Counted from the first letter of the stretch, positions 1,742 through 54,690 are shown. The stretch: DNA of 64,000 nt from Podarcis bocagei (GCA_964188305.1 OZ076903.1), one strand, 5' to 3'. Numbers and translations: made by a program. The notes: a model not told the origin generated them from the sequence alone.

Positions 1742-2732
1742 GTAAAGGAGTATCACCTGCAGCTCTTTCCTGTCATTATTGTGAGAACTTGAACAACTAG
1801 CTCTCATACGCAAGCCCAAAAGATGCATTGCGTGAACTTACCAGTTCTACCTGTCTTGTGTCAAACTATAGCAACGCAGGGCGTGTTTCTCAAGTCTTAT
1901 GGATAATAAGTTTTATTGAGTTTTCGCTTTACAAATGAATGGCTGTCGTTGAACACACAAACTAGCATAGTCCCCAATCTGTGTGATAGATTCCCCAAAG
2001 AGAGAGTTATTAAAACTAAAGCTGTATCTCTCCAAGAAGACTGGGAATTTGGGGGAGGGGGCTGTTTTTTTTGTTATTTTTGACCAATAACCACATTAAA
2101 TTAAATTTATCATGTTTTGCCACCTTTCGCTATTTTGTGTTGTGCCAATTTGTGTCAAAGTGCTATCTCCCATATTATGTCATAGCACGTATTTGCAAGA
2201 AGGCAATTTTAGATTGAACACTTTGCTGGGCTATAATTACCTACTGCACGCCCACTCTAGTGGTAGATCTACTTTCTGAGGCTCCACCGAAGATGTCATG
2301 GGGATTATTGGATTCCTGTTGAAAAGGTAAATCCCTTGCTACGAATTCCAGTTTTCTGTGGTTCCAGGAGGCTATTCCTAACCCTTAGAAGAGCACTACT
2401 CTTGGACAGGAGGCAGAACCAAACACCTGGTTCTTCTTCCTCCAGGGTAACTCTCCCGTAGCCATGGGGTTCCCATGGCCATCTGGCAACTGGCATTGCC
2501 AAGACACCACAATATGAAAAGTAACTTCCAGCAAATTGAAGCACATTTTTATCACTCTAGGTTCAAATCAATGACTGGCAGAAAAGAAGCAGCAGCAGCA
2601 GCAGCACAGATTTGTTTGGGTGGGGATCCAAGTCTTTATGATGCACCCCTTTGGCTTAAATGTTCTCCTGGGAAGTGTCTGCTCAAATATCATTTATTTG
2701 AGGGGATTATTTTGATGTTTTTCCCTTTTCAG

Positions 2733-2843
2733 CTCCGCAGCTCAGAGCGGCTTCTGCTCATCCCTCTATTCTGCATTGTGGCCACAGCCGTGGTTTGGGC
2801 TGCAGCCCTTTATTTCTTCTTCCAAAACCTTAGCAGCTGGGAG
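2733..2843 (+). CDS. SIDT1: SIDT1 exon ([37 protein letters not shown])
   Basis: ttttcag acceptor, gtaggt donor, 111 nt; lies inside ORF 2475..2921. Confidence 0.95.
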
Positions 2844-4273
2844 GTAGGTTTCCTCATTTGTTGCCCTCTCTTGCGCTTCAGGCACAAAATACATAAATTT
2901 AGAAATACAGTGTATAATTGATTTCCTCCAAGCTTTCTAACGCTTGCAATACTCACAAATTTCCAAAATGATCTTAACTGCCCAAAGCCACCCTCCACAG
3001 CCCTATAATAACAATAGAAACCTGCACATGATCCACATACTTAAAGTTTAATCCCTGGGATTTCTGTTAAATTCTGTTCTGTTCTTCTGTTAAAGAAGAT
3101 CTTGGGGAAAGAATTTGGCAAGAGTTGTGCTGGAGATCTTGAATAACTGCTGCCAGGCATTAGGCTAGATGGGCAAGGCCTTCCGGGACTGTCTGCTTGG
3201 CATGGCCTTTGCAATCTTGAAGACTTACTGCAGTAAACAGCTGCAGGTATTGCAGCAGCAGCCTGGTTGCTGTAACTCTTTATTTGCTCTGCCTTCCAAT
3301 TTGAATCCATGTCTTCAGACTTGCATCTCAAGCTCCTGGGCAACGTTTTATTTCTGTGTTGTTTCAAATGCTGCGACACACCAAATATTAACGAGAACCA
3401 GTTGTGCAGAACTTGCCCTTTGTTTACGCAGAGTTGTCCCCCTCATGCTCTTGGGAGGTCTGTGAACAAGTTTATAGAATGTACCCAATATCCTTGCTAT
3501 TCAGGATTGCAGGCATGAGTGGGGTTTGCAGCCAAATGCACCGGGCATCCATGGAAGTGATAATCTTACAACTTCGCCTCTCTCCAAGCACTACAGGAAT
3601 GATAGTGTTGCAAGCAACGAGAGCTGTTGCACAGGCATCCCCATGAACATATATGAAAACCACACGACCCCAGAAACCCGGAAGTGGGGGGGAAAGACTT
3701 GAAGAGCCTCAACCAAGCTCTGCCTCGTGAGTCGGAGGTGCAGCGGGGCTTGGCTCTTCATCCTCTTGGCTAACAGCTGAGGCACAGAAAAGCAGGTGGT
3801 GCTGCTGCTCCAGTTCCTGTGCATCAGCTGTTAGCCAAAAAGCCCCCGTGTGCTTCTTGGCTTGTGAGGAGACCCTCCCCGGAGCCCAAAGAGGACATCC
3901 CGTTTAGGCTCCGGGGAAGGTCTCCTCACGAGCTGGAGGCGCCGTGGGGTCCTCATTTCACTTCTGCATGCAGGGGGGCAGAACATAATCCACGTGTAAA
4001 TGGAGAGTTGCCTGTCTTCTAGTCAGCCCCAGTAGTCAAGGGATACGATACTGCCAATGGTTTGCTGAAGATTAACCAGGCCTCTTCCAAAGTCATGATT
4101 ATCTGCTGAAGGCATTGTGGCATATATCCCCCTCTCCCCCCCCCCAATATTTTCCCCCTGCTTCTGGGAGGGTGGGGAGCACACATCTGTTAGGAATTTC
4201 TCTACAGCACCAGAAAGACAGAACTTTTGAGACCGAGCTGGAATTCACTGCCTGTGCCCATTTTTTTCTGTAG

Positions 4274-4387
4274 GAAACTCCCGCAGAGTCCCGAGAGATA
4301 AACCGCCCGTGTATCCTTCTGGGATTCTTTGATGATCATGATGTCTGGCACTTCCTCTCAGCAGCTGCACTGTTCTTCTCCTTCTTG
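4274..4387 (+). CDS. SIDT1: SIDT1 exon ([38 protein letters not shown])
   Basis: tgtag acceptor, gtgagg donor, 114 nt; carries the DDHDxWH metal-binding motif of the SID-1/CREST superfamily. Confidence 0.96.
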
Positions 4388-4535
4388 GTGAGGTTTTCCT
4401 TAAAGTCCCTCTATCAATGTTATGCTGGATAGGCCTCCTGTCTCACCTGGATCCATGTCATAGCACACTCAGTGCATTCCCACACATTACCTTAAATACT
4501 TGTTGCAGTTTTAATGGACATGCAGGTCAGACTTA

Positions 4536-4777
4536 CAGTGGCACCTCAGGTTACATACGCTTCAGGTTACATACGCTTCAGGTTACAGGCTCTGCTAAGC
4601 CAGAAATAGTACCTCAGGTTAAGAACTTTGCTTCAGGATGAGAACAGAAATCGTGCTCCGGTGGCGCAGTGGCAGCAGGAGGCCCCATTAGCTAAAGTGG
4701 TGCTTCAGGTTAAGAACAGTTTCAGGTTAAGTACGGACCTCCGGAACGAATTAAGTACTTAACCTGAGGTACCACTG
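4536..4777. mobile_element. Tc1/mariner (pogo/Tigger-like) MITE, family A
   Basis: TA-flanked CAGTGG(C/T)ACCTCAGGTT terminal inverted repeats; same family recurs several times in the window. Confidence 0.85.
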
Positions 4778-4835
4778 TACTCATTTCCTGCTTAAAATAA
4801 TCACACAAGAGAAACACAAAGATCATTTACTTCCA

Positions 4836-4924
4836 TCCCCTGCAGTGCAGGAATCTTTCATCCAACACGGGCCTTGAACCCATGACCTTGACATGAGGAG
4901 TCGCATGTTGTATCAACTAAGCTA
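4836..4924 (-). mobile_element. Degenerate SINE: tRNA-Lys-like head fused to a CR1 3' tail
   Basis: Minus strand reads tagcttagttgatac...gggttcaaggcccgtgttgg then attcctgcactgcagggg, the same tail as the CR1 end at 59908-60026. Confidence 0.55.
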
Positions 4925-5147
4925 CCTCCCCACCGTTATTTCTTCCCAAAGGTTGGTGGGAGTGGGCAACACCATCTAGAAACTGAAAGGTTCCTTTTTT
5001 CTGGGGCATCAGGGGTGTTGTCTCTGCTTCCGCAGGAGGCTGAGTAGACCTTTGCCTGCCTGCTTTGGGGTTTCCTGACACGGGAGAGTGTGTTCTGCAG
5101 AACCACCCAGAAGACCAGACTCCAATCTCTGCCCTGCTTTGTTCCAG

Positions 5148-5210
5148 GTCCTGTTGACTCTGGATGACGACTTGGATTCTGTGCGGAGAGACAAGATACC
5201 CGTTTTCTGA
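5148..5210 (+). CDS. SIDT1: SIDT1 last coding exon (VLLTLDDDLDSVRRDKIPVF*)
   Basis: ttccag acceptor; TGA at 5208-5210; IPVF end as in SIDT1. Confidence 0.96.
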   Translation, partial: VLLTLDDDLDSVRRDKIPVF

Positions 5211-5482
5211 ACCGCAGGCAGTTTTGGCGTTGCTTGCTCAAACCCATTGTGTTGCCAGCCCTGGACAGTTGACGGAAAACAAACTTGTCAGTGTACACAA
5301 AGCGCATCAAGTACACACTGGGAAGAAACGTGTTCAACTGGCAAATGAGGAAGACCTGAACAGAGGACAGGAATCTTTTTGCAACTGGAGGGCTCAGGCT
5401 TGTATGCCAGAGTGTTGGTAGAAAGTAAAGAGATGAGAATAATTATCTGGGGGTTCAGATCTTTTTCAGCCATCTGATGAAG

Positions 5483-5488
5483 AATAAA
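5483..5488 (+). terminator. SIDT1: Candidate SIDT1 polyadenylation signal (AATAAA)
   Basis: First AATAAA after the SIDT1 stop codon; use not shown. Confidence 0.4.
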
Positions 5489-7429
5489 ATTTACTCCCCA
5501 ATGTGAATTTTAGTGGTGGAACTTACGCTTCCACTCACTGCCTGGAAACAGCGGGTATAAGTGCAATAGTGTTGAGACTTGAGAGATCTCTTGTATTGAA
5601 AAATCAAGCATGTATTAGCCATTGATAGTTCTTAGTCTGATTCTCCCGATGTTTATGGTAAGCTGTTACCCTTTTTACTACTCATACCCAACTGCTTAAT
5701 TTATCACTATTAGTTTACAATGGAGCAGCATCCTATCTGCTCCTGTACAGGAACGCTTTGACCCCACCCTGGTCTGCCAATAACAGCCCACCACCATTTT
5801 CTTTAAATTCCGATTTAAAAATTACACACACCCTGTACCCTTCTTCCTCAGAGAGTTATTTCTTGGCTAATTTGAATAGCACAGCTGGAAGGGAAAAGCA
5901 CACGCCTCAAAAAGGAGCTTTCCAATCTGGGCTACAGGTGTTCTCTTCCTCATCCACAATCTGCCACTCCTCTCCCTGCCATCATGTTATTATTTAGAAA
6001 GCCATTTTTCAGGCCCCTTGAACTGAAATGACAGTGTTGGTTCTGTTCTCAAAGAGGGTAAAAGGCTCTGAAGTGTTACGATACTTCAAGGTCTAGGAGT
6101 CCCCTCTCTCTTCTGGCTGTTGCTGCAGCAGACTGCTCATGAATTCTTTTCCGAAAGCTGCAATTATTAACATTTGCTGTGAATGCCAAATTTTCTTAAG
6201 TATGCCTTTCTCTTGAGAAGAGGAAGAGGAACGGTTTTAGGAAGCAACTCTTACATTTTTCCTAAATTGCTTTATTTTAGATTATACATAGCAGGGCACT
6301 GCGTTTCTTGTTTGCCCCCTGCTCTGCTAAATTTTTGAATGAAAAGTTGGCTCACTATGACTAGGTAAGGCAGTAATTATTCCAAAAGTGTATCGATCGA
6401 ATCTACCAAAATATCTGCCCATTCTGCTGTTAATTCTTAAACCAGCTATTAAACCAGCTCAGACTGTGCTGTCTGCTTACCTGGGCAAAAGTACTTTTGT
6501 ATCAAAGTACCAGGTGCTGAAATGCTGCACTGATGTGTTTTACAATGTCGTCGTGTCAAATGCAATCAAATGTTTAAAAGAAACCTGAGAACTCAAAACA
6601 AGATTGGTTCCAAACCCACCCAAAGCTTCTTCTGCACCCCTAACTTGTACCTCCTCCATGTCTGCTGCCTGGAGGTTGAACTCAAGAGTCTGGAGAGACG
6701 GTATTCTTGAACCCCTTTTCAAATCCTTATCAACCTTTGTATTTCATAAAACTTGTGGCCAGCAATGGACAGTGTGAGGTGGAAAGGCTCCGTTTCAAAT
6801 TCCACCTCGGACATAAACTTGGTAGCTGTGGGCACAATTCTGTCTCTGAGACTCAGGACGCCTTCCATTGTCAATGGCTAAAATATCAGCCTGCCCTTCA
6901 GCTAAGAACTTTTGACAGAATGTAAGTGAAGCACTGTTGTTACTTTATATGTATTATACATTGCATTTTTTCAGGGTTCCATTACCTAAATAGATGTTTA
7001 AACACTAGTTTCCTTGTGCTTTTGATTTGTAAGTTTAGAGCCTTTCATTTCATGTTCATGCCAGTCTTTTCTTCTTTCTTTAAAAGCACAGTCCAAATAC
7101 TGAACAGACCAAGCATATGCTATAAAGTTCTAAAAGGAAGGGAACCCAGGAGAATAGGCCAAATCAGGCTGTTTCTTTTGGTCTCATCCCCCCAAACCTT
7201 TAGCCAGAGTTGGGGTGACAGGCAGAATTTGGATCAGCTAGTCAAAGTTGCTAACAGATAAAAAAGGAACATGAGAGTATATGGACCCAGTTTGTAAACA
7301 TAGAGGCGTTCTTAAGTGAAACTTGCTAGCCGATTTAAAATGATAAATCCATCTACAATGCAGAAGTAGGCAGATCAAAGAAGTTAAAATTAGTTAAAAA
7401 CCACAAAAAGAATTTCTTGACTTTAAATT

Positions 7430-12744: not shown

Positions 12745-15700
12745 TCATACAGCCGAACTGCAATCATGACCTAGAATATGGCTTATGTTGTGAGCGGGCC
12801 GGTTTGATGATTGCTTGGAAGAATCAGAAGCAGATGTGTTCGCTATAGAGAGCAGAGGCGAGATTGCAGAACCATCTGGAGGAAGAGCTGTAGCAATCTC
12901 TGGGAATAAAGAAGTCAAATTAAAATTGGACAAGTGAGATGAATTGGCCATATGCATTGGGGGCATGTCTGTCAAAAGGGGGAAACTTGGCTGGGCAAAG
13001 CCCACTGGCCTGGGAGGAGACAAGATGGAGCCAAAGCGATTGTTTAAACCTCCACCACTTGGCTTCTCTGTGCTTGGATTAGGAAACATCTGGTTCGAAA
13101 AATAAGGGATTGAAATGTCATTTGAAAGGGTGGGATGGGCAGGAGAATATGGCGGATAAAAAGATGGCAACGTATTCTGAGGATCTACTGGAATCAGGGC
13201 TGGCGTTCGAGTAGTACTAGACTGAGTCACTGGTGGGATGAACGGTGCGTTGGCATTTATGGGGGGATTCATTCCACCCTCTGGAATAAAAGGGAATCCA
13301 AAATTTTGAGACAGACTGTGCTGATCAGGAGCTGCACTGTCATTAGTCATTTGTGGTCCTTCAGGCATGAATCGCACAATACTGCCTCTTTTTTCTAGAG
13401 CAGGTTGTTGCCTTCCAAGGATCATACTACCACTGGCAGCCAAAGGAAGGTGGGGAAGACTAGGATCAAAGACATTTCCGTGTCTTTGATTTCCAGAACG
13501 ATTTCTTTCAGGCTGGCGAATTTTAGAACCACTGTTATCCTGGAGGGGATGTCTTGATCGCTGAGTAACTGAAGAATTTGGTTGACGAACTGATGGTGGG
13601 ACTTGCTCGGCGTTCCGAGAGACGGGCGGGTGGGTGAGAGGAGGTCGGACGACTCCATGCACATTGCTAGAAACTGGAGCATTCATGTGACCCTTGGTTC
13701 CATGACTCTCTGTCATTCTCATGGGGTTGGATTTCTGAACAGAAATATTGGGGCTTGTATTGCGACCCTGAATATCTCCAGAGGAACTTGAAAATGGAAT
13801 ATTTAATGTATTGTTCCTATTATTAATAGCACCAAGAGACATATCGCAACTTTCCCTGTTCTGACCATCACCTTCTCTTCGAATGTGAATACTGTCTCTT
13901 GCTGGGGGGCAATTATATTCAACAATAGAAGAAGTGGCACACTGTGGATTTCTCTGGTGCTCTGCAATTGGTCTTTGGCCTCCACCGACTTGCTCTCCAA
14001 GATGAGGGACAAGTAAACTCTGCATAAAACTTTGGTGGCATGTATTTTCATTGTCTCTTGGGGGAGGAAGAACATTTCCTGCTGAAATGCCCTGAACTGG
14101 CTGATAGGGCAACCTCTTCTGTCTGTCTAGGGGTGGCCCAGCATTCTGAGCTATTCGAAAAGCCTGCGTCTGCATCCCTCTGAGGGATGACATTGAGGTC
14201 CCTAGTTCACTGTTCCTTGAGGACTGCACATCAAACTGCTGGTTAGCGCCATTTGCCTTGAATGTCTGGCACTCAGAAAGTCTTTGAACATCTGCTCCAA
14301 CCGTGTGGTCCACTGACATGCGTCCTTGCATGTTATGGATTACCAATCCTTTATTCCTAGACACATCAAGGTAATTTCTCATTTCAAGATTATCTGAAGC
14401 CCTCAAGCTCTGAATGGATATTCCTAGTCTCTGCTCTGAATTAGAGGGCGTCTTTCCAATAAGTGCCTCTGCGGAGTAGCTGCTAACCCTGTTTCTTTCT
14501 TGTCTGTGGGGGACACAGGTCATGTCGGATGACCTGGTGACAATACTAGGCTGGGACACCATTTGCTGCTCCAAAGCCCTGGAGGTCATAAGTCTTTGCA
14601 TCTGGCCATGTCCTGGCACGTGTTCAGAAGAAACTCCAGAGCCTGTCTGTCTGTTGCCCACATCTGGGGCTTGCTGGTGCAGAATGTCCTGGTTCAGACG
14701 GCTCTGAGGATGGTTGTGGTGAGTTCTGTTTGCAGTGGGGTTCTCGCATGTCTTCTCAGGCTGAGAAGAGGTGTAGTGCTGCTGCATTTGCTGCATCTGT
14801 GGGTGGTGGGGGTGGGGCTGGCTGCTCTTTGACCGCGACTGGTCGCTTCCATGATGCTTCTGCTGCAAAGCAAGTGTGCTGGGCTGGGCTGCTTGGATGA
14901 GAGACCTTTTCTTCTGCATTTGTGCCTCCTGATGCATTACTCTTTGCTGGTGGACGCTGAGGGCTTGGGAATGGATAGGGCTTTCTGCATGAGAAATGTG
15001 GTGCTGGAGTTGATACAACTGATGTCTTTCTCTTAACTGTCCAGCCTGTTGTTGTTGCTGCTGCTGCTGCTGCTTTATATACGGATTGCTATGAAGGTGG
15101 GTCATTCCTTGAGTGGGAGCATGTGGAATAGGTTGCAGGTGCTGTCCTGTCTGATCCGGGACAGAAGGCTGAGAATTACACTGGATTTCAGCTTGCCTCA
15201 GAGCAGGTGGCACAAAATTGCTGCTTGGGAACAGCCGGCTAAGACTATCCGTGTGCCCTTGACTGCTCCCGGATACTGCCATATTGGAGGAGTTGGAGGA
15301 GATCTGGTTGACAAGGATGCGACTTTGATCTGAAATATCGTCAGCTGTTTGGTTCAGCAAAGCCATCCCTTCAAGCTGCATAGGTGCCGTCTGGCAGTGT
15401 TTCTGTCTCTTCGGCGTGGAAAGCAGGTGATCATCTGGAACAGAACGTTTGACAGAGTCTTTGCGGCTTTCCTGGCTTTGCTGCTTTAAGTGTGGCTCAT
15501 GCATCTGAGAAGCCTGCATGGTGCTGGTCCGAACAGCAGACAGTTGTTCTGAAGCATAATCTGTCATTAGCACTGGAGAATGTCCTGGAGACTGAGTCAT
15601 ATATGGATTAGTGGGCATGGATGGAGTCATAGTCACAGGAACAGCTGATTGTTCTGAAGTTGGGGGTAAACCTGAGCAGCTCACAATGGGGTGGATGATG

Positions 15701-18700
15701 CAGCTTTGATGGATGAGATTATTGACACTTAAGCTTGATGTGCTTGAAGACTGGGAGGCTGGAATTTGCAAGGTTACACTGGACACTTCCACTCCAACGG
15801 AACAGCTTTGTTTCTCGACTGACCGATCAACGTTTATTTTCACTGCATTCTGGGTGCTGAAATTTCCTGGCACTGTTTCTATCTGATCTGCCTCTTTAAT
15901 GGTGTGAGACTTAAGAGACTGGTCTCTTCTCAGAGATGCCTCTTCACCATCCTTGGAAACAGCAGCTCCCGACACGGCTGCTTTTGCATGGGCCTCTTGG
16001 TCAAAAATGGCTTTTGCTGCCAAAGCTACAATATCCGTTTGCTCTGAAAACGTACAGCTGTTGCATGTATTCACTGAAGTGTTGTTGGGAACATTTTCCC
16101 TGCATGTGTCTGGCAACATGGATGCAACTGAGAATCCACAACTGCTGCCTGAGCTAGTTGACATGGGAGAGTCTGCTTGTCTATTAGCAGTGACTGTTTC
16201 TTGTTCAGAGGTACAGGAATGAGACTGTGCAAGGTTTTCCTCTTCAGTGTTCACCAGCAAGAGCCCCTCCTGCTTCTCTGCCAAGTCATTCGAGTCTATA
16301 ATTGATTTAGTGTTTTGGGTGCGAAAATTAGGGTGTTCAACTTGGACCGAGAAGTTTTTTTCTACAGCTTCTCCCACTTTACTGAAATCAGAGAAAATCT
16401 TGGTCAGGCCTTGCTCTTCTAACAAATCACTGGCCTGCATGACTATGGAACAATTTTGTTCCATTGTGCAGATTTCAGACACCTCTGTTCTGGGAACACC
16501 GTCTGCACTCGCCCCACTGTTTGCCACAGATGTCCCAGAAATATGAGAAGCTGTCACCTGAGAGTCAGAAGATGTTAAAGGGCTGGTGGGGATGCATTTA
16601 GATGATTCTGATAACTTAGAATTTGTTGCTGAATTAGTTTGAGGAGGCAGAGATGCACACTCTCTGGAGACGGGAGCAACCACTTCAAACTGTTCTGAGG
16701 AGGCCGATTCGAGTGGCAACGATCTCGGCACTATAGCTGCATTCAGGTCAGAGGCCAAGGTACTTTCCATGTCTTGCTCAGCTCTCAGTCTCTCTTTGGG
16801 ATGGGAATTGGAAGCATCATTTTGGGCAACATCGTTAGGTGCTCCCCTATTTGCTTGTGATATGGCTAAGCTTTGCAACACCACATTATCAGGCATGTTT
16901 CCAAGCAAGATGTCACTTCCTGAATGCTCAGGGGTAGCCTCCACATCCCCACTATCTAGTTTCTTCAAATCTTTGCAAGAATTCACTCGACATGCAAGAT
17001 TGCTGCTGGCCACCAAGCATTTTTTAGTACTTTTATTAGACCATTTTGAAGCCAGACCAAATGAGGTTTTGGGGGGAGAAGCACCCACTGAGCACGAAAC
17101 ACTGGTTAACATTACATTCTCAGCAGCAGAAGAGGATGCTGCTGTAGCTGCCAGCAGAACATGGGTACTTGGTGTGGTTTGGCTGCTGACCGTTGATGGA
17201 TTTGTAGGCTGACTGGTAGACACCTGCAGACAATTCTGTCCAGCCATCTGCGATATGCTTTGATTGAGGCTAGCTAAAGCACCAAATGTATTGAGGGCGA
17301 CGTTTGTATTTGGATCTTCACTGGTGGTAGGCTGAATAACTTGCATAGGGGTTTGATCCGAACCTCCAGAACAGGACTTCACAGGCTTCAATGCAAACAG
17401 CTGCCCATTTAAAGAAATAGTCTGCGGAAGATGTTGGTTCGCCATTGCAACTGAAAACGTTTGTGTCGAGCCAGAAGATGGTGCAGAAGATGGCCTTGGC
17501 AAAATATGGACAAGATGCTTCCCACCAAACATATGAGGGCCAGAGGCATTTTGCATAGGGTTACTAGCACTTGCTGAGGGAGCGGCTCCATTTATAGGCA
17601 TTCTGATAGGAGGAGGAGGAGGAGGAGGAGGAGGAGGAGCAGAGAAAAGGGAGAGAGGATTTGGGTTAGCAGTCTGTATAATTACAATCTGCTGGCTAAC
17701 AGTTTGGTTGGGGACTTCAGTTCTCAACACTGGTGGACCTGCACTGGCATTTGAAGGCTGTAAAATGACTACATTTTGTTTCGCAGGTGGTGCAGTGGCA
17801 GATGGACCTACTGGCTGCGGCACCTGAATCAGCTGCATCGGTGGATTCAATGGAAGGAGGCCATTTGCAGGTTGTGCGAGAACCTGCGTCTTAGTGACTA
17901 GCGGCTGCATAGGTAAGGATGGGTAAGATGGCAAAGTAACCATGATTTGCTCAGCTGTTTGTTCACCAGCAGGTAGAGGATTGTTTAAACTGGGAGCACT
18001 TGCCAAAATCCTGTTAGGAGTAGATGCTGCAATGCTAGCATTGTTAACTGGCTGATTTAAGAGGGCTGCGTTTATGCTGGACAGAGTACGGTTTAGAGGC
18101 TGAACAGTATTCCCTGCTAGTTGCAAAGTAGTCCAAGTAGTCTGGGTGTTTCCAGCAGAAGTCATTCGCGTCAGGCTACCCATGGTTTTGGAATTTGAAG
18201 TGCCAGCAGCTGAAGAACTGGGAAAAGGCCACTTATCTACAGAAGCAGCAGGCAAAGTGTTAATTTCTGTTACAGCCTTCTGGATTTCTACAGCAGATGC
18301 TGCTGGTCCTACGCTGCTTTTGAAGATGTTTCCTGCAGACAGCTTTCCATCCATGGAGAGCATTACAGATGGAGTACAAGTGGTATCAGCTGCAGAAACC
18401 ACACAGCTTTCTAGGGATCCATTTCTTGGATCCTCTTTAGGGGTCATGTCTGCCAGCTGAGCCAGAGATCTGTCTAAACTAGCACTGACAGGAAGGCTGT
18501 TGCTAGGCAAACCCGCTTTCTCAATTAACTTGAAAGTCTCTGGTTTATTTTTAGATTTGGAGATGTCATCTTCATCTTGTGGAGAACTCTGCATTTCAGG
18601 CTGTAGCCTCACTAGCTGCAAGGGATTCAGGGAGCTGTCAGCACTAGAACTAGCAGGTAGGCCTTGCTCATTCTCAGAGGTAGAGTGCTCAATAATTTTC

Positions 18701-19184
18701 TTGGCTGGATTTGATGGGCCTGATACCAGTGGAGAAACTGAAGTCTGAAGCCCTGATTTGATTTCCGTGGAATAGATACTAGAAATGGTCACAGGAGTGA
18801 CTAGGTTGCAAGTCCTCTGGACAGGAACAACATTAGCAGTCTGCTTCTGTAAATTATGACTGATATTAAAGGTTATTCCTTGGACCGATGCCCCCTGGTT
18901 GCTTCCACCAAGCTGACTGCCATTGGAATATACAATGATGTTCTTTTGCAGCTGGTCGCTGGGGATCACAACAGACACTTTTGCATTTTTCAGGTTCCCT
19001 TTCTTCTTTTGCTCCTGATCATTGGGGATAACAACAGAAACTTTTGCGTGCTTGAGGTTCCGTTTCCAGTGGACAGTGGGGTCATCATAAAGGCAAATGT
19101 CGTTGGCTTTCAATAATGCAATGTAGCGCCCATTTTCTTTCTGAAGTTCATCCAACTGCTTCCGGAGCTTTTTTATTTCTTCAG
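12745..19184 (-). CDS. USF3: Upstream stimulatory factor 3 (bHLH-ZIP, KIAA2018), giant last coding exon
   Basis: ctgcag acceptor at 19185-19186; 6440 nt open to TGA at 12745; AEEIKKLRKQL...HNISHILGHDCSSAV matches USF3. Full join 23626-23583,21532-21504,21333-21251,20535-20439,19184-12745 = 6693 nt, 2230 aa. Confidence 0.98.
15046..15072 (-). repeat. Coding (CAG)5(CAA)3CAG, the USF3 Q9 tract
   Basis: YIK-Q9-AGQLRERH. Confidence 0.95.
17608..17637 (-). repeat. Coding (CCT)10 microsatellite encoding P10 in USF3
   Basis: Pure (agg)10 on the plus strand, in frame. Confidence 0.95.
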
Positions 19185-32317: not shown

Positions 32318-32575
32318 CATAACCGGGTAAGATTGGCTTCCATAAACATGGGTTTAACTGTGGAGGCCAATTCTGGATCCACACGTCCTTCCACAGTGGG
32401 GACATAGGTTTCCAGGTGGGAGTTGATCACGGTGTGGATTTGCCAAGCATGCCTTCCTCTTCCTTCCCCCTTTGTCCTGAGTTGAAGCATCTTCAGAACC
32501 CATGACACCTTTGGTAAAGGCTGTTCTCCAATTGGAGCACTCACAGGCTAGTGTTTCCAGTTGGTGTTTATACTA
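32318..32575 (-). mobile_element. RTE-clade LINE 3' fragment, same family as 30910-31160, opposite orientation
   Basis: 32485-32575 is a diverged reverse complement of 31060-31150. Confidence 0.7.
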
Positions 32576-33070
32576 CAATTTATGTATGGTGTCTGGAGAA
32601 GGTATTCCATAAGGGACAAGGGGAGCTGCCTGTTCCATGTCACTCCAGAGGATCTCGGCAGCAGGCAGCACCACTAGGACCTCATCAGATGACCTTTGTG
32701 ACCTGGCAGGCCTATAAAGAATAATCAAATAACCTGGTCCTAAATTCTTTAGGATTCCATATTGTACGCCAACTAAACCTTATTGAGCGCTCCCTCTCTC
32801 TCTCTCCTGCAAATCTAGTTGTGAGCTACAAGCTTACTTTGCTGGAGTCTGTGGAAATGAGTTTCTGGCCTTCTCCCCAGATAAACTCATCTTGACTCAA
32901 AGCATGCAAGGACAAAGCTAGCTTAGGTGGGAAGTTTGCTTGAGAGGACTATCCAATTTGTCAAGTTGCATCACAGCCTTGTTATATGAAGGATTTGACA
33001 ATTGTGTCAGTGTATGGACAGTTTGTGCCTGCGAATTGGGTAGATAAGCTTCTGGTAGAAGTTCATCCAG

Positions 33071-34877
33071 AGGACTTCCGGGTTGGCGCGGACAGCTAAT
33101 GGCGGATTCCCTCCGAGCTCCGGAGGGAATCGGCTCCGCTGAGGACGGGTCCTGCCGCGACGGCGACGCGGGGACCCTCAAAAACCTCAGGCGCGGATGC
33201 CTGAGGACCTGGTGACTCGGTGGGCACCTTAAGCGCTCTCCCCGATCCACGAAGAGCCTTTTTAAAGGCTACGGAGAGGATACGGAGAGTGGCGTGGTGC
33301 TGAGAGTAAACCGCTACCCCAGGGGAGCGAAGCCGTGTGCCATGGCTGAAAAGCGCTGACTTGTTTCCTTAAATTCGGACTTGAAAAGAAGCAACCCATG
33401 AGTAGAGGATTTGGACTTTAAAATAAATTATCTCTGAATTTGATACGACCGGGGGATGTGTCAAAAGGAAGTCCGCACCCCCCTTCCTGCAGAAGATTTA
33501 AAGCAACGATAGAGAACTAAGCTGGAGAGCCTACCCTTTTGGGGTGAGTTAATAAGACATTAACTTTCACGATTTGACAAAACAAGTTGTGAGCTGGAGT
33601 GCAAGAGTGGAATTTTAGAAGACTTTCTTCTTGTCATGTGTAACCCCCCCCTCCCGGGCCCGGGAGCGTCCTGCCTCTAAGTCTGCTGAAGAGGAAAGGA
33701 GTTTGACAGCTGTCAAAACTGTCAAACGGGCAATTTAAAGTAAAAAATCCTTTTAACCTAAGATCCCTCTGGACTAAAAGTGATACAATTGAACTAAAGT
33801 TGTTGGAAACAAAGAAACTAACGAGGCAGAGGGCTGTTGGAAAAGGATTATTAAGTATCAGATTCCCTCTAGGGGGATTCCTGAGACATTACAATGGCAG
33901 TGGATGGAAAGTTACTAGCGGAGCTAGAAAAAACATTTCAACTGGTTGGAATTCTACAAGAGCAGAGTTTGGCTATGAACAAACAGCTTATGACCTTGAC
34001 TTCTGGAATAAACAGCTCTGCTGAATGTACTGAGGATGTGAATAAGAAAGAACCCACAGCTGAACTGGAAGAGATATTTCAAGAATTGAAGACTAAACAA
34101 GGAGAGGAGGAAACTCAGATGGAAAGTACCAACCAGGAAGCGACACTAGTGGAGCATAAACAAGAAGACCTTTGGATAACATGGATTACAAATCTGCGAA
34201 AGATGAGAAAGATGAAGGAGGAGGCCTCTAGAGCATTTGGAATACAGGAACTTAAAATAAAGAAGAAATATGACTGGGGCCTCCATTTCAAAGATGAAGG
34301 GTGTGTGAATCTTTTGCAGCAATGGTTTTCAAGCTTTCTTGTGGAAAGAAGATTTGGTTTGAATGAGACAGAACTTCCTCGAGTTTTATTGAACAACATA
34401 AAGGACTACCAACAAGACCGGCGGAGAGGGACTGAAAGAGATTGGAAGGCCTCGGACGTGAGGAACCCAGGCTAAGAACTGTTATTATAGACTTATATTT
34501 GGGAAGGGACGCAAACCGGGGATGGAAGGGGGGGGGGAAATAGAATGTTAATAACACTCATGAATTTTCGGTTTAATTAATATTTCTATCTAATATAAAC
34601 TGGGAAATTGATGGGAGGGAACCTGAGTCCAACTTAGGAAAGAGTTTAAATTTTTTATAAGAAGATTATACTAAGATGATGAAGAGGAGATATAATAATT
34701 TGCTGACATAATTATGGAAATTGGGATGCTTGAAGGGGTGTGGGGGGAAGTCAAGGAACAAGTTTATGAAAACAAGATTTTTGAAATTATGCATGTTTTT
34801 GTCTTTGTCTATTAGTGTGTGTTATGTCTTTATAAAATTTGGAAAACTAATAAAAAATTTTTATAAAAAAAAAAAAA
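33071..34877 (+). mobile_element. Full-length non-autonomous L1-type retroelement (HAL1-like), ~1.8 kb
   Basis: TSD AAGTTCATCCAG at 33059-33070 and 34876-34887; GGACTTCCGG 5' start; CpG-rich 5' UTR; one ORF; AATAAA at ~34849 and A-tail. Confidence 0.85.
33894..34475 (+). CDS. 193-aa ORF of the HAL1-like element; coiled-coil-like N-terminal half, possibly a diverged L1 ORF1p
   Basis: Good Kozak context (acaATGG), uninterrupted 582 nt, E/K/Q/L-rich heptad-like pattern; no endonuclease or RT motifs. Confidence 0.6.
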   Translation: MAVDGKLLAELEKTFQLVGILQEQSLAMNKQLMTLTSGINSSAECTEDVNKKEPTAELEEIFQELKTKQGEEETQMESTNQEATLVEHKQEDLWITWITNLRKMRKMKEEASRAFGIQELKIKKKYDWGLHFKDEGCVNLLQQWFSSFLVERRFGLNETELPRVLLNNIKDYQQDRRRGTERDWKASDVRNPG

Positions 34878-35518
34878 GTTCATCCAGCCTCATTTTTTAA
34901 TGCTTGCATCCTGTCTACATCTAGTGATATTTGTTTTCTGAGCCCCTTTTGTGGATTCTTACACAAGCATATATACAAAGAACTGCTTTATTAGTCTCTT
35001 TGCTGTCATCACCCCCGCCAGGAACAGTACTGCAATAGGCTTTTCACCCAGTTTAAAAGTTAGGTGCCCGATTCTCCCTGAGACCATGATAGTGCAATCA
35101 GGTCTCTTCTGCACAGTCTTTCTTATTTATTAGCAGAATCTGCATTTTGGGCTTTCTGTAAATCCTCTGACCCAACTATAGCTGCTTCAGAAGAGTCTCT
35201 GCTTGCTAGCATGTTACTATGTCACATACCTTGCAGGGTTGGAGACCGGCAATTTCTCTTGCTGGGACAGAGGAAGAGGTGAGAAGTGAGACACAATTCA
35301 GGCTGTTGCCTGACAGTCACTGCAGCTTTTCTCAGCCTGCCTTAAGAGAAAAGGGCATGTCTGGGTTGGAGATGTTAGTCTGCAAGCTGGTCCTACTCTT
35401 ACTGCATGAGGGTGGTAAATGGAGAATGCTCCCATCTTTAACAGAGAAAGGCAGGTAAGGGAGAAAGGAAGCCAGAAACACAAGGCCAGCTCATGGGCCA
35501 TGTAACTTGTGGTGCACC

Positions 35519-53477: not shown

Positions 53478-54690
53478 TTTAACCAAAGATGGAAAGAAGA
53501 CAAAGTCCCTACCAGAGAAGAATGGCAAACTAAACTGGAACATGCAGAAATAGCAAAAATGACCAGAAGAAATCAGAAACCAAGTAGATGAAAGCTTCAA
53601 AACAGAATGGGAGAAATTAACACTTTATCTTAGAGACCATTGTAAACAAATGAAAACATTAGCAGGTTTTTAACAACACTTGTAATGTAACAAAAACTTT
53701 GGATAATGGAGATAGATTTAAAATATAGGTGATGAAATACATGCAGTTGAAAAGGACAACATAAAGACCCATGGAAGGAATGCGGGGGGGGGGGTCTGAG
53801 ATTCAGGGGAATTTTGTATTTTGAGTATATTTGTGATATTGTAAAAAATATATATCTGTTAAATCAAGTAAAATATTTCCAAAAGGGGGGTGGGGGAGTT
53901 CAACCAGTCTTTTCAGAGGACTCACTTTTAGCCCTAACCTGCAACTTTTGGGGGGAGTTGTTTGTTTTGTTACATACATACATCTTCCATGCCCCCCCTT
54001 TTAGGCTGACTAGATGCTGAGGAGAATCTACCTCTTTTAAAAGCTGGCACAACACATAATGTTGACTTACTACACATACAAAATATTTATGTGCGTTAAG
54101 GATTGCTGTTGCTTAAAAAGAAAGAAAAAAATGTCCTGTGACCACCTCCTTGGCACAGTTAAAATTTGGGTGGGAGATGAAACTGATGGACTATGCAGAG
54201 TGAAACTGACGGGGGAAATCAGAAAAGATACAAAAAAAATGTAATCTTAAATATGGAACCCATGGAGGGAGGGAAGGAGGTCCAAAGGTGCAAAAGAACC
54301 TTTTATTTTAACGTTTAAAAAGGTTAACGTTAAAATGTAAAAAATTGTGTAAAACCAGCAAAAAATATTTTTTTTAAAAAAAAGTTGGGCTGGGTGCCAA
54401 CAAAAGAAGAATGCCAGGTGGAACTGGTGGCCTATGCAGAGATGGGAAAACTGTCGGGGAAGATCAGAAACCAGGAAGATCAAGTATTTTTAAAGGACTG
54501 GAATAAATTCTTCATTTATTTAAAAGACCACTGTAAACAGTTAAATTCACTGGCAGGGATGTAATGACACTTGGAATGTGGAATAAACTATGGAAAGGAC
54601 CTTTTGTTTTAATGTCTGAAATGGTTAAAGTTAAAAGGTAAAAAAACTGTGTAAAACCAATAAAAAAAAACATTATTTTAAAAAACGAAG
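53478..54690 (+). mobile_element. Three consecutive 5'-truncated L1-clade 3' ends (~53478-53885, ~54175-54383, ~54395-54690)
   Basis: Each encodes a version of W..KL..YAE..KLTG.IRNQ...F...W.K...YL.DHCKQ...LAG* or part of it, then an AT-rich tail with an AATAAA-like signal and A-run. Confidence 0.7.

Follow-up and report, generated by a model that had tools for sequence, protein, structure and literature searches.

The window analysed here, a 64,000-nucleotide stretch of Podarcis bocagei DNA (GCA_964188305.1 OZ076903.1), carries at 33071-34875 an inserted element of 1,805 bp that lies between perfect 12-bp duplications, holds a single long open reading frame (ORF) and ends in a short poly(A) tail. 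A first-pass annotation, made from the sequence of the window, had taken it for a complete L1-type retroelement that lacks reverse transcriptase (RT), is flanked by a 12-bp target-site duplication (TSD) and resembles the HAL1 elements of mammals. We found that the element is a complete member of a repeated lacertid family of RT-less poly(A) retroposons of ~1.8 kb, that the window copy is a young insertion, polymorphic or very recent, and that the ORF has been kept under purifying selection across diverged subfamilies.

Both states of the insertion site were recovered from public reads compared with 32400-35500 of the window (runs labelled X1, X2 and X4). Contigs from X2 and X4 join 33058 directly to 34876 and hold one copy of AAGTTCATCCAG, the 12 nt of which fit both sides, and a contig from X1 crosses the filled 5' junction with 0 differences; X2 is from another individual under the same species label, X4 is from another species and X1 may be the assembly's own sample. 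Because the read contigs show the exact empty site, the AAGTTCATCCAG repeat is a real TSD and not a chance repetition, in agreement with the first-pass annotation, and since the site is empty in X2 and X4 and filled in X1, the insertion is polymorphic or very recent.

We compared the window copy with natural copies only. The members of the family at hand, two copies from Podarcis lilfordi (one of them full-length) and nine short contigs, have the 5' start, the untranslated regions (UTRs) and the ORF in common. The full-length P. lilfordi copy (L011, 85%) has a 17-bp TSD, 14 terminal A and an intact ORF of 194 aa, and the other (L001) matched element nucleotides 2-1371 at 85%. L003, L008 and L009 have the ORF and the 3' UTR in common with the window copy, L003 also part of the 5' UTR, whereas L007 and L010 match it in the 5' UTR; the A-tails of the other copies are 3-14 A long. 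The 5' end is fixed, in that three aligned copies begin at the same GACTTCCGG and L011 begins 1-3 nt further in, and both ACTTCCGG and TAATGGCGGA are invariant in three aligned heads, one of which is just 72% identical. Summed over the element, word depth exceeds that of unique flank 35- to ~3,000-fold, a ratio that gives an order of magnitude rather than a copy number, with peaks over the first ~250 nt and at 34376-34479. The P. lilfordi copies, the contigs and the read depth thus make the element multi-copy, not the single-copy deletion of an L1 that the first-pass annotation had held open as an alternative; the other alternative that it named, a pseudogene of a host gene, fails because the protein searches described below found no relatives outside the family. 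No other family copies and no pieces of L1 ORF1 were found within the 64-kb window, and the literature searched gave no description of a squamate HAL1-like family.

L001 also contains a nested insertion (2500-4148 and 4149-5512), in which a young copy lies within the 3' UTR of an older, 72%-identical one. The young copy in turn breaks off at element nucleotide 1371, and the ORF of the older copy is frameshifted, yet its end still reads ...RDLRASDIRLPG-stop; once inserted, copies therefore decay in the manner of transposable elements.

The anatomy of the window copy (Table 1) bore out the earlier description closely: the start of the element, the YY1-like motif, a 5' UTR of ~820 nt with a CpG-rich front, an ORF in good Kozak context, and the G-tracts, AATAAA and A-tail behind it are all present where they had been placed. 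The element starts A+GGACTTCCGG, its first base being 33071. The observed/expected ratio of CpG stands at 0.84-1.05 over the first 300 nt; downstream it is mostly 0.2-0.45 (0.81 for nucleotides 301-450). The head folds as RNA with z = -4.4, and in reads no other part of the element is as well kept or as abundant. The ~820-nt 5' UTR has only five to six upstream ATGs (6 in the window copy), which open short upstream ORFs only. One of these, a 38-codon frame at 33099-33215, begins at the ATG within the YY1-like motif and has equal length in L011. Endonuclease and RT are absent, as had been claimed, the 193-aa frame being the only long sense ORF and one that matches no Pfam domain. A head of the kind found in short interspersed elements (SINEs) derived from small RNAs (tRNA, 7SL, 5S) was not found either, with no Rfam family significant in 32900-35000.

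Table 1. Features of the retroposon insertion, in window coordinates.
Feature	Position	Strand	Remarks
5' target-site duplication AAGTTCATCCAG	33059-33070	+	exact 12-nt direct repeat; joint of the empty site
CpG-rich 5' head	33071-33405	+	putative internal RNA polymerase II (Pol II) promoter
5' UTR, 823 nt	33071-33893	+	homologous to the 5' UTRs of L001, L003, L007, L010 and L011
ETS-type motif ACTTCCGG in head	33074-33081	+	
YY1-like motif AATGGCGG in head	33098-33105	+	
Palindrome in head, 11-bp stem	33104-33131		
Single ORF, 193 aa	33894-34475	+	A at -3, G at +4
Most conserved internal block	34394-34538	+	last 27 codons, stop and first ~60 nt of 3' UTR, including G-tract 1
3' UTR	34476-34864	+	G-tracts, AATAAA and a terminal motif resembling likely L1 tails
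G-tract 1	34518-34537	+	
G-tract 2	34723-34747	+	
AATAAA	34849-34854	+	
Short poly(A) tail	34865-34875	+	11 A; 13 counting the first two A of the TSD
3' target-site duplication AAGTTCATCCAG	34876-34887	+	second copy of the 12-nt repeat

We then considered what the ORF has in common with other sequences. Its relatives show 23-68% identity to the window protein, and the complete ones are 176-215 aa long; those of the same length, at 34-68% identity, comprise one annotated in Podarcis lilfordi and others on short Logan contigs. When 1.84 billion representative proteins were searched exhaustively with a profile, 11 matches came back, all from the family (ten of 154-215 aa and one 129-aa fragment), and a further word search with a 17-sequence profile added only one more, a Podarcis fragment. 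The check that the first-pass annotation had proposed, ORF retention and the ratio of nonsynonymous to synonymous divergence (dN/dS), came out in favour of a kept frame. Among 11 coding sequences, with dS ranging from 0.3 to saturation, a single open frame with the same start and end is present in all, every one of the 54 computable pairs has a Nei-Gojobori dN/dS of 0.24-0.82, and a codon model gives an omega of 0.57, a value significantly lower than 1, with omega fixed at 1 costing 24.6 log-likelihood units (twice the log-likelihood difference, 49.3). Because the terminal branches take in neutral decay after insertion, this omega probably understates how strongly the transposing lineages are constrained. 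Across thousands of read contigs, only one of the listed indels lies inside the ORF and it is of 3 nt; all those listed in the UTRs are of 1-2 nt.

Constraint is concentrated at the end of the frame. The last 27 codons have a proportion of nonsynonymous differences (pN) of 0.18 against 0.46 for synonymous ones (pS), compared with 0.39 against 0.58 in the rest of the ORF; pN/pS at the C-terminus is 0.26-0.39, and nowhere in the ORF is constraint stronger than in the last 13-27 residues (...RASDVRNPG-stop). That ...NRRRGTERDL(K/R)ASDV(R)(N/D/S)PG-stop hardly varies is therefore largely a matter of the protein. Besides an N-terminal coding stretch in some, the block that spans these codons and the beginning of the 3' UTR is the sole part that blastn still finds in the most distant subfamilies, and its read depth is 5-40 times that of neighbouring bins. 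Some constraint at the level of nucleotides likely also acts around the end of the ORF, to judge from the alignment: the codons GCC TCG GAC (A-S-D, 34452-34460) are identical in 11 of 11 sequences, with two four-fold sites invariant despite a mean pairwise pS of ~0.5, and conservation extends ~60 nt beyond the stop into G-tract 1. A hairpin of GGCCUCGG with CCAGGCU at the stop codon was considered and rejected; all 77 of 77 cells pair, but there are zero double changes, and its stability does not exceed that of shuffles (z = -0.37). Within the conserved C-terminal motif, the G at 34444 is a private change of the window copy.

The predicted product is acidic and rich in helix, with a heptad-patterned helix near the N-terminus (residues ~3-45) and a C-terminus that reads ...RRRGTERDWKASDVRNPG-stop. 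Its isoelectric point (pI) is 5.3 in the window copy and 4.8-6.4 in 11 family members, whereas the ORF1 protein (ORF1p) of L1 is a basic RNA chaperone. No Pfam family fits, Transposase_22 being matched by 0 of 17 members; searches of PDB by sequence and by profile gave nothing relevant, the profile search of 1.84 billion proteins gave no relative of ORF1p, and look-alikes in the ESM Atlas were at chance level only. AlphaFold2 models built with 9 and 17 sequences were of low confidence (predicted local distance difference test, pLDDT, 49 and 53). They were confident (pLDDT ~90) for residues 11-30 only, within the N-terminal helix, and modelled the remainder as low-confidence helix or disorder with no beta strand, so that neither an RNA-recognition motif (RRM) nor the C-terminal domain (CTD) of ORF1p is to be seen in them. 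In the alignment, the N-terminal helix has hydrophobic residues at a spacing of 3-4, compatible with a short coiled coil. By any test run, on sequence or on predicted structure, the protein is not a recognisable L1 ORF1p. The lack of a clear RRM motif had been pointed out in the first-pass annotation, and the empty Pfam and PDB searches and helix-only models agree with it; its designation of the element as HAL1-like, in the sense of one that encodes ORF1p, finds no support in them.

Two other readings of the protein sequence were set aside. A 2A-type ribosome-skipping peptide would read D(V/I)ExNPG and then P, its NPGP being invariant; the tail DVRNPG-stop is one residue short of this, and its N varies to D or S. 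A C-terminus left over from the last codons of L1 ORF2 was rejected, since the ORF ends of likely L1 tails in the window differ from it (...DHCKQ..LAG-stop) and the profile search returned no ORF2p; a likeness between IKD(C/Y)QQN and LKDHCKQLN was too weak to be used.

Among single-cell RNA reads with the same species label, 1,065 match the family at an identity of at least 90%, mostly from other copies. Over most of the ORF and the 3' UTR, the + strand is in 4-12-fold excess, and the strands are roughly equal over the head; this strand call is provisional, as the library chemistry is not on record. A sense bias fits transcription from the element's own head, because passive read-through from host introns should give none.

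Having neither endonuclease nor RT, the element needs a driver, and its insertion marks are of L1 type: AATAAA is followed by a plain, short A-tail, the TSDs are of 12 bp (window copy) and 17 bp (L011), the 5' ends differ by 1-3 nt, the window copy having an additional A, and the target of L011 on the nicked strand is TT/AA. We compared the 3' terminus of the family with A-tailed repeat ends at 54.1-54.7 kb of the window that are likely L1 tails. For L009 and L011, the terminal 60 nt aligned to one of these (t3, 54631-54690) with z = 5.6-5.7 (0 of 1,000 shuffles); the window copy and L008 gave z = 2.2. The common motif is TGTG(T)AAAACCAATAAAAA...ATTAT(T)TTAAAA; there was no similarity of the family 3' terminus to the other tail type, t1. 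Apart from the likely L1 tails, nothing in the window resembles the terminal 40 nt. The stretch PT..W..KL..YAEM..IRNQE..W encoded by these tails looks like the C-terminal segment of ORF2p. We infer, on good grounds in the sequence, that the family uses L1 endonuclease and RT. The first-pass annotation had proposed a non-autonomous family that borrows L1 ORF2p and keeps a protein of its own: the family and the protein stand, while for the borrowing of ORF2p the insertion hallmarks and a suggestive 3' terminus are what can be offered. At 54130-54690, t2 and t3 are adjacent A-tailed, LINE-like 3' fragments that both set in near one point of the reading frame (...W.V/G...), t2 being without the ORF end; a tandem pair, or a short element derived from a tail, fits them better than two random 5' truncations would.

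We consider it likely that the window copy is a recent full-length copy of an RT-less lacertid poly(A) retroposon, probably driven by L1, with an orphan protein not recognisable as ORF1p. If the element were instead a HAL1 in the strict sense, it would be a lizard L1 that has lost ORF2 and most of ORF1, and the 193-aa protein would be a shrunken, fast-evolving remnant of ORF1p, in essence the N-terminal coiled coil, which still acts together with ORF1p or in the same manner. Such a descent agrees with the L1-like layout (a YY1-like motif just within the 5' end, an ORF where L1 has ORF1, and a 3' UTR that contains G-tracts and ends much as in L1) and with an N-terminal helix of 3-4 hydrophobic spacing and high pLDDT. 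We nonetheless judge it unlikely, given that no member matches Transposase_22, that the large profile search gave family members of the same size only and the PDB profile search none, that models devoid of beta strands leave no room for the RRM and CTD, and that the acidic pI is at odds with a basic ORF1p.

It is highly improbable that the family descends from a host mRNA with promoter activity that was retroposed and then amplified, the ORF being a captured host gene. Searches that covered 1.84 billion representative proteins and 5.8 billion clusters found no homologue outside the family, several old subfamilies each have the full architecture, and the copy number is high, with a depth 35-3,000 times that of the flank; what speaks for a retrogene is the mRNA-like succession of 5' UTR, ORF with Kozak context, 3' UTR, AATAAA and A-tail, together with ETS and YY1 motifs, which are generally common at housekeeping transcription starts. 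We give just as little credence to a driver from another squamate LINE clade (RTE/BovB, CR1/L2 or R4). Dependence on L1 is reached by inference, and the nick site of the window copy is not L1-like, both of which leave room for such a driver, but AATAAA with a plain A-tail and TSDs of 12-17 bp are marks of the L1 type, and the resemblance of the 3' end is to likely L1 tails. Partners of CR1/L2 and RTE end in specific 3' repeats common to their LINE.

Several observations weigh against the L1-driven retroposon with a selected orphan protein that we prefer. An omega of 0.57 amounts to moderate constraint only, and position 34444, a T (TTG, L) in nearly all family contigs and RNA reads, is G in the window copy (TGG, W184). 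The nick site of the window copy, CTT/CT, fits the consensus of the L1 endonuclease poorly. The likeness of the 3' terminus is short and A/T-rich, with a composition-corrected nhmmer profile giving E = 2.1, and searches of PDB and Pfam gave no support for the window tails as ends of L1 ORF2. The comparison with L1 covers 3' tails, and the role of the protein is putative.

The family can be set beside several known systems. The HAL1 elements of mammals are non-autonomous, lack ORF2 and are presumed to be mobilised by L1 (PMC5753468, citing Smit 1999 and Bao & Jurka 2010). Like them, the lizard element is without ORF2, flanked by TSDs and A-tailed, has a 5' UTR of its own and a single retained ORF, and forms a repeated family; unlike them, it has no recognisable ORF1p, its protein being half the size, acidic, without RRM or CTD and without detected homology to ORF1p. 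Since HAL1 is mammalian and the lizard family squamate, their origins would be independent. In its way of life the family thus matches HAL1, while its protein is an orphan; descent from L1 itself is only suggested. HeT-A of Drosophila telomeres is an RT-less, poly(A)-tailed non-LTR element that has its own non-enzymatic protein and uses the RT of another element. The lizard family is alike in lacking RT, carrying poly(A), keeping a non-enzymatic protein and relying on a foreign RT, and differs in that the Gag of HeT-A is a recognisable zinc-knuckle protein and targeted to telomeres, whereas the lizard insertions are dispersed and their protein is an orphan. SVA elements are inserted by L1 in trans (PMC3287187). 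The Pol II transcript layout, AATAAA, A-tail and TSDs of SVA and of processed retrocopies recur here, but those have no selected protein of their own, in contrast to an ORF conserved across subfamilies. With L1 ORF1p, finally, the protein shares its place as the first, and here only, ORF after a long 5' UTR and an N-terminal amphipathic helix with heptad spacing; evidence of an RRM or CTD, a basic pI and a match in any search are what set it apart by their absence.

Two further features of the window lie outside the element. Just upstream of the insertion, 32400-32607 is an extremely abundant repeat, with a word depth of 1.5e5-1.3e6 against ~16-110 in unique flank and with RNA reads on both strands; ARAGORN found no tRNA head in it, and it is probably a SINE or other high-copy element. 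At 12745-19155 (-) lies an open frame of 2,136 codons with no significant Pfam domain.

The way of life that we propose for the family begins at the CpG-rich head with its ETS-type and YY1-like motifs, which would act as an internal Pol II promoter and so make each new copy transcribable. The mRNA would be translated into the small, acidic, largely helical protein, and the RNA would be copied into the genome by resident LINE-1 endonuclease and RT through target-primed reverse transcription. The protein, above all its C-terminal tail, probably aids the retrotransposition of its own RNA, because the ORF is retained in every transposing lineage examined. By analogy, it could be a ribonucleoprotein (RNP) or adaptor component, the part played by ORF1p for HAL1 or by Gag for HeT-A. 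A bolder version, which we think quite improbable, has the protein as a lineage-specific invention whose tail, together with the RNA block at the stop codon and G-tract 1, acts at or just after termination of translation and keeps the RNA on the ribosome or in an RNP, a place at which L1 ORF2p could be captured as soon as it is made. If this were true, it would be a protein-based counterpart of the ribosome docking of Alu and a new way round the cis-preference of L1.

Most known parasites of LINE-1 that carry an ORF come from mammals, in the form of HAL1. Being currently or very recently mobile, with several old subfamilies side by side and a small protein, not recognisable as ORF1p, whose tail is strikingly constrained, the lizard family offers a tractable natural system in which to ask what an RNA needs besides poly(A) to win the L1 enzyme, and whether a protein other than ORF1 can supply it. 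Its insertions are also usable as polymorphic markers in wall lizards.

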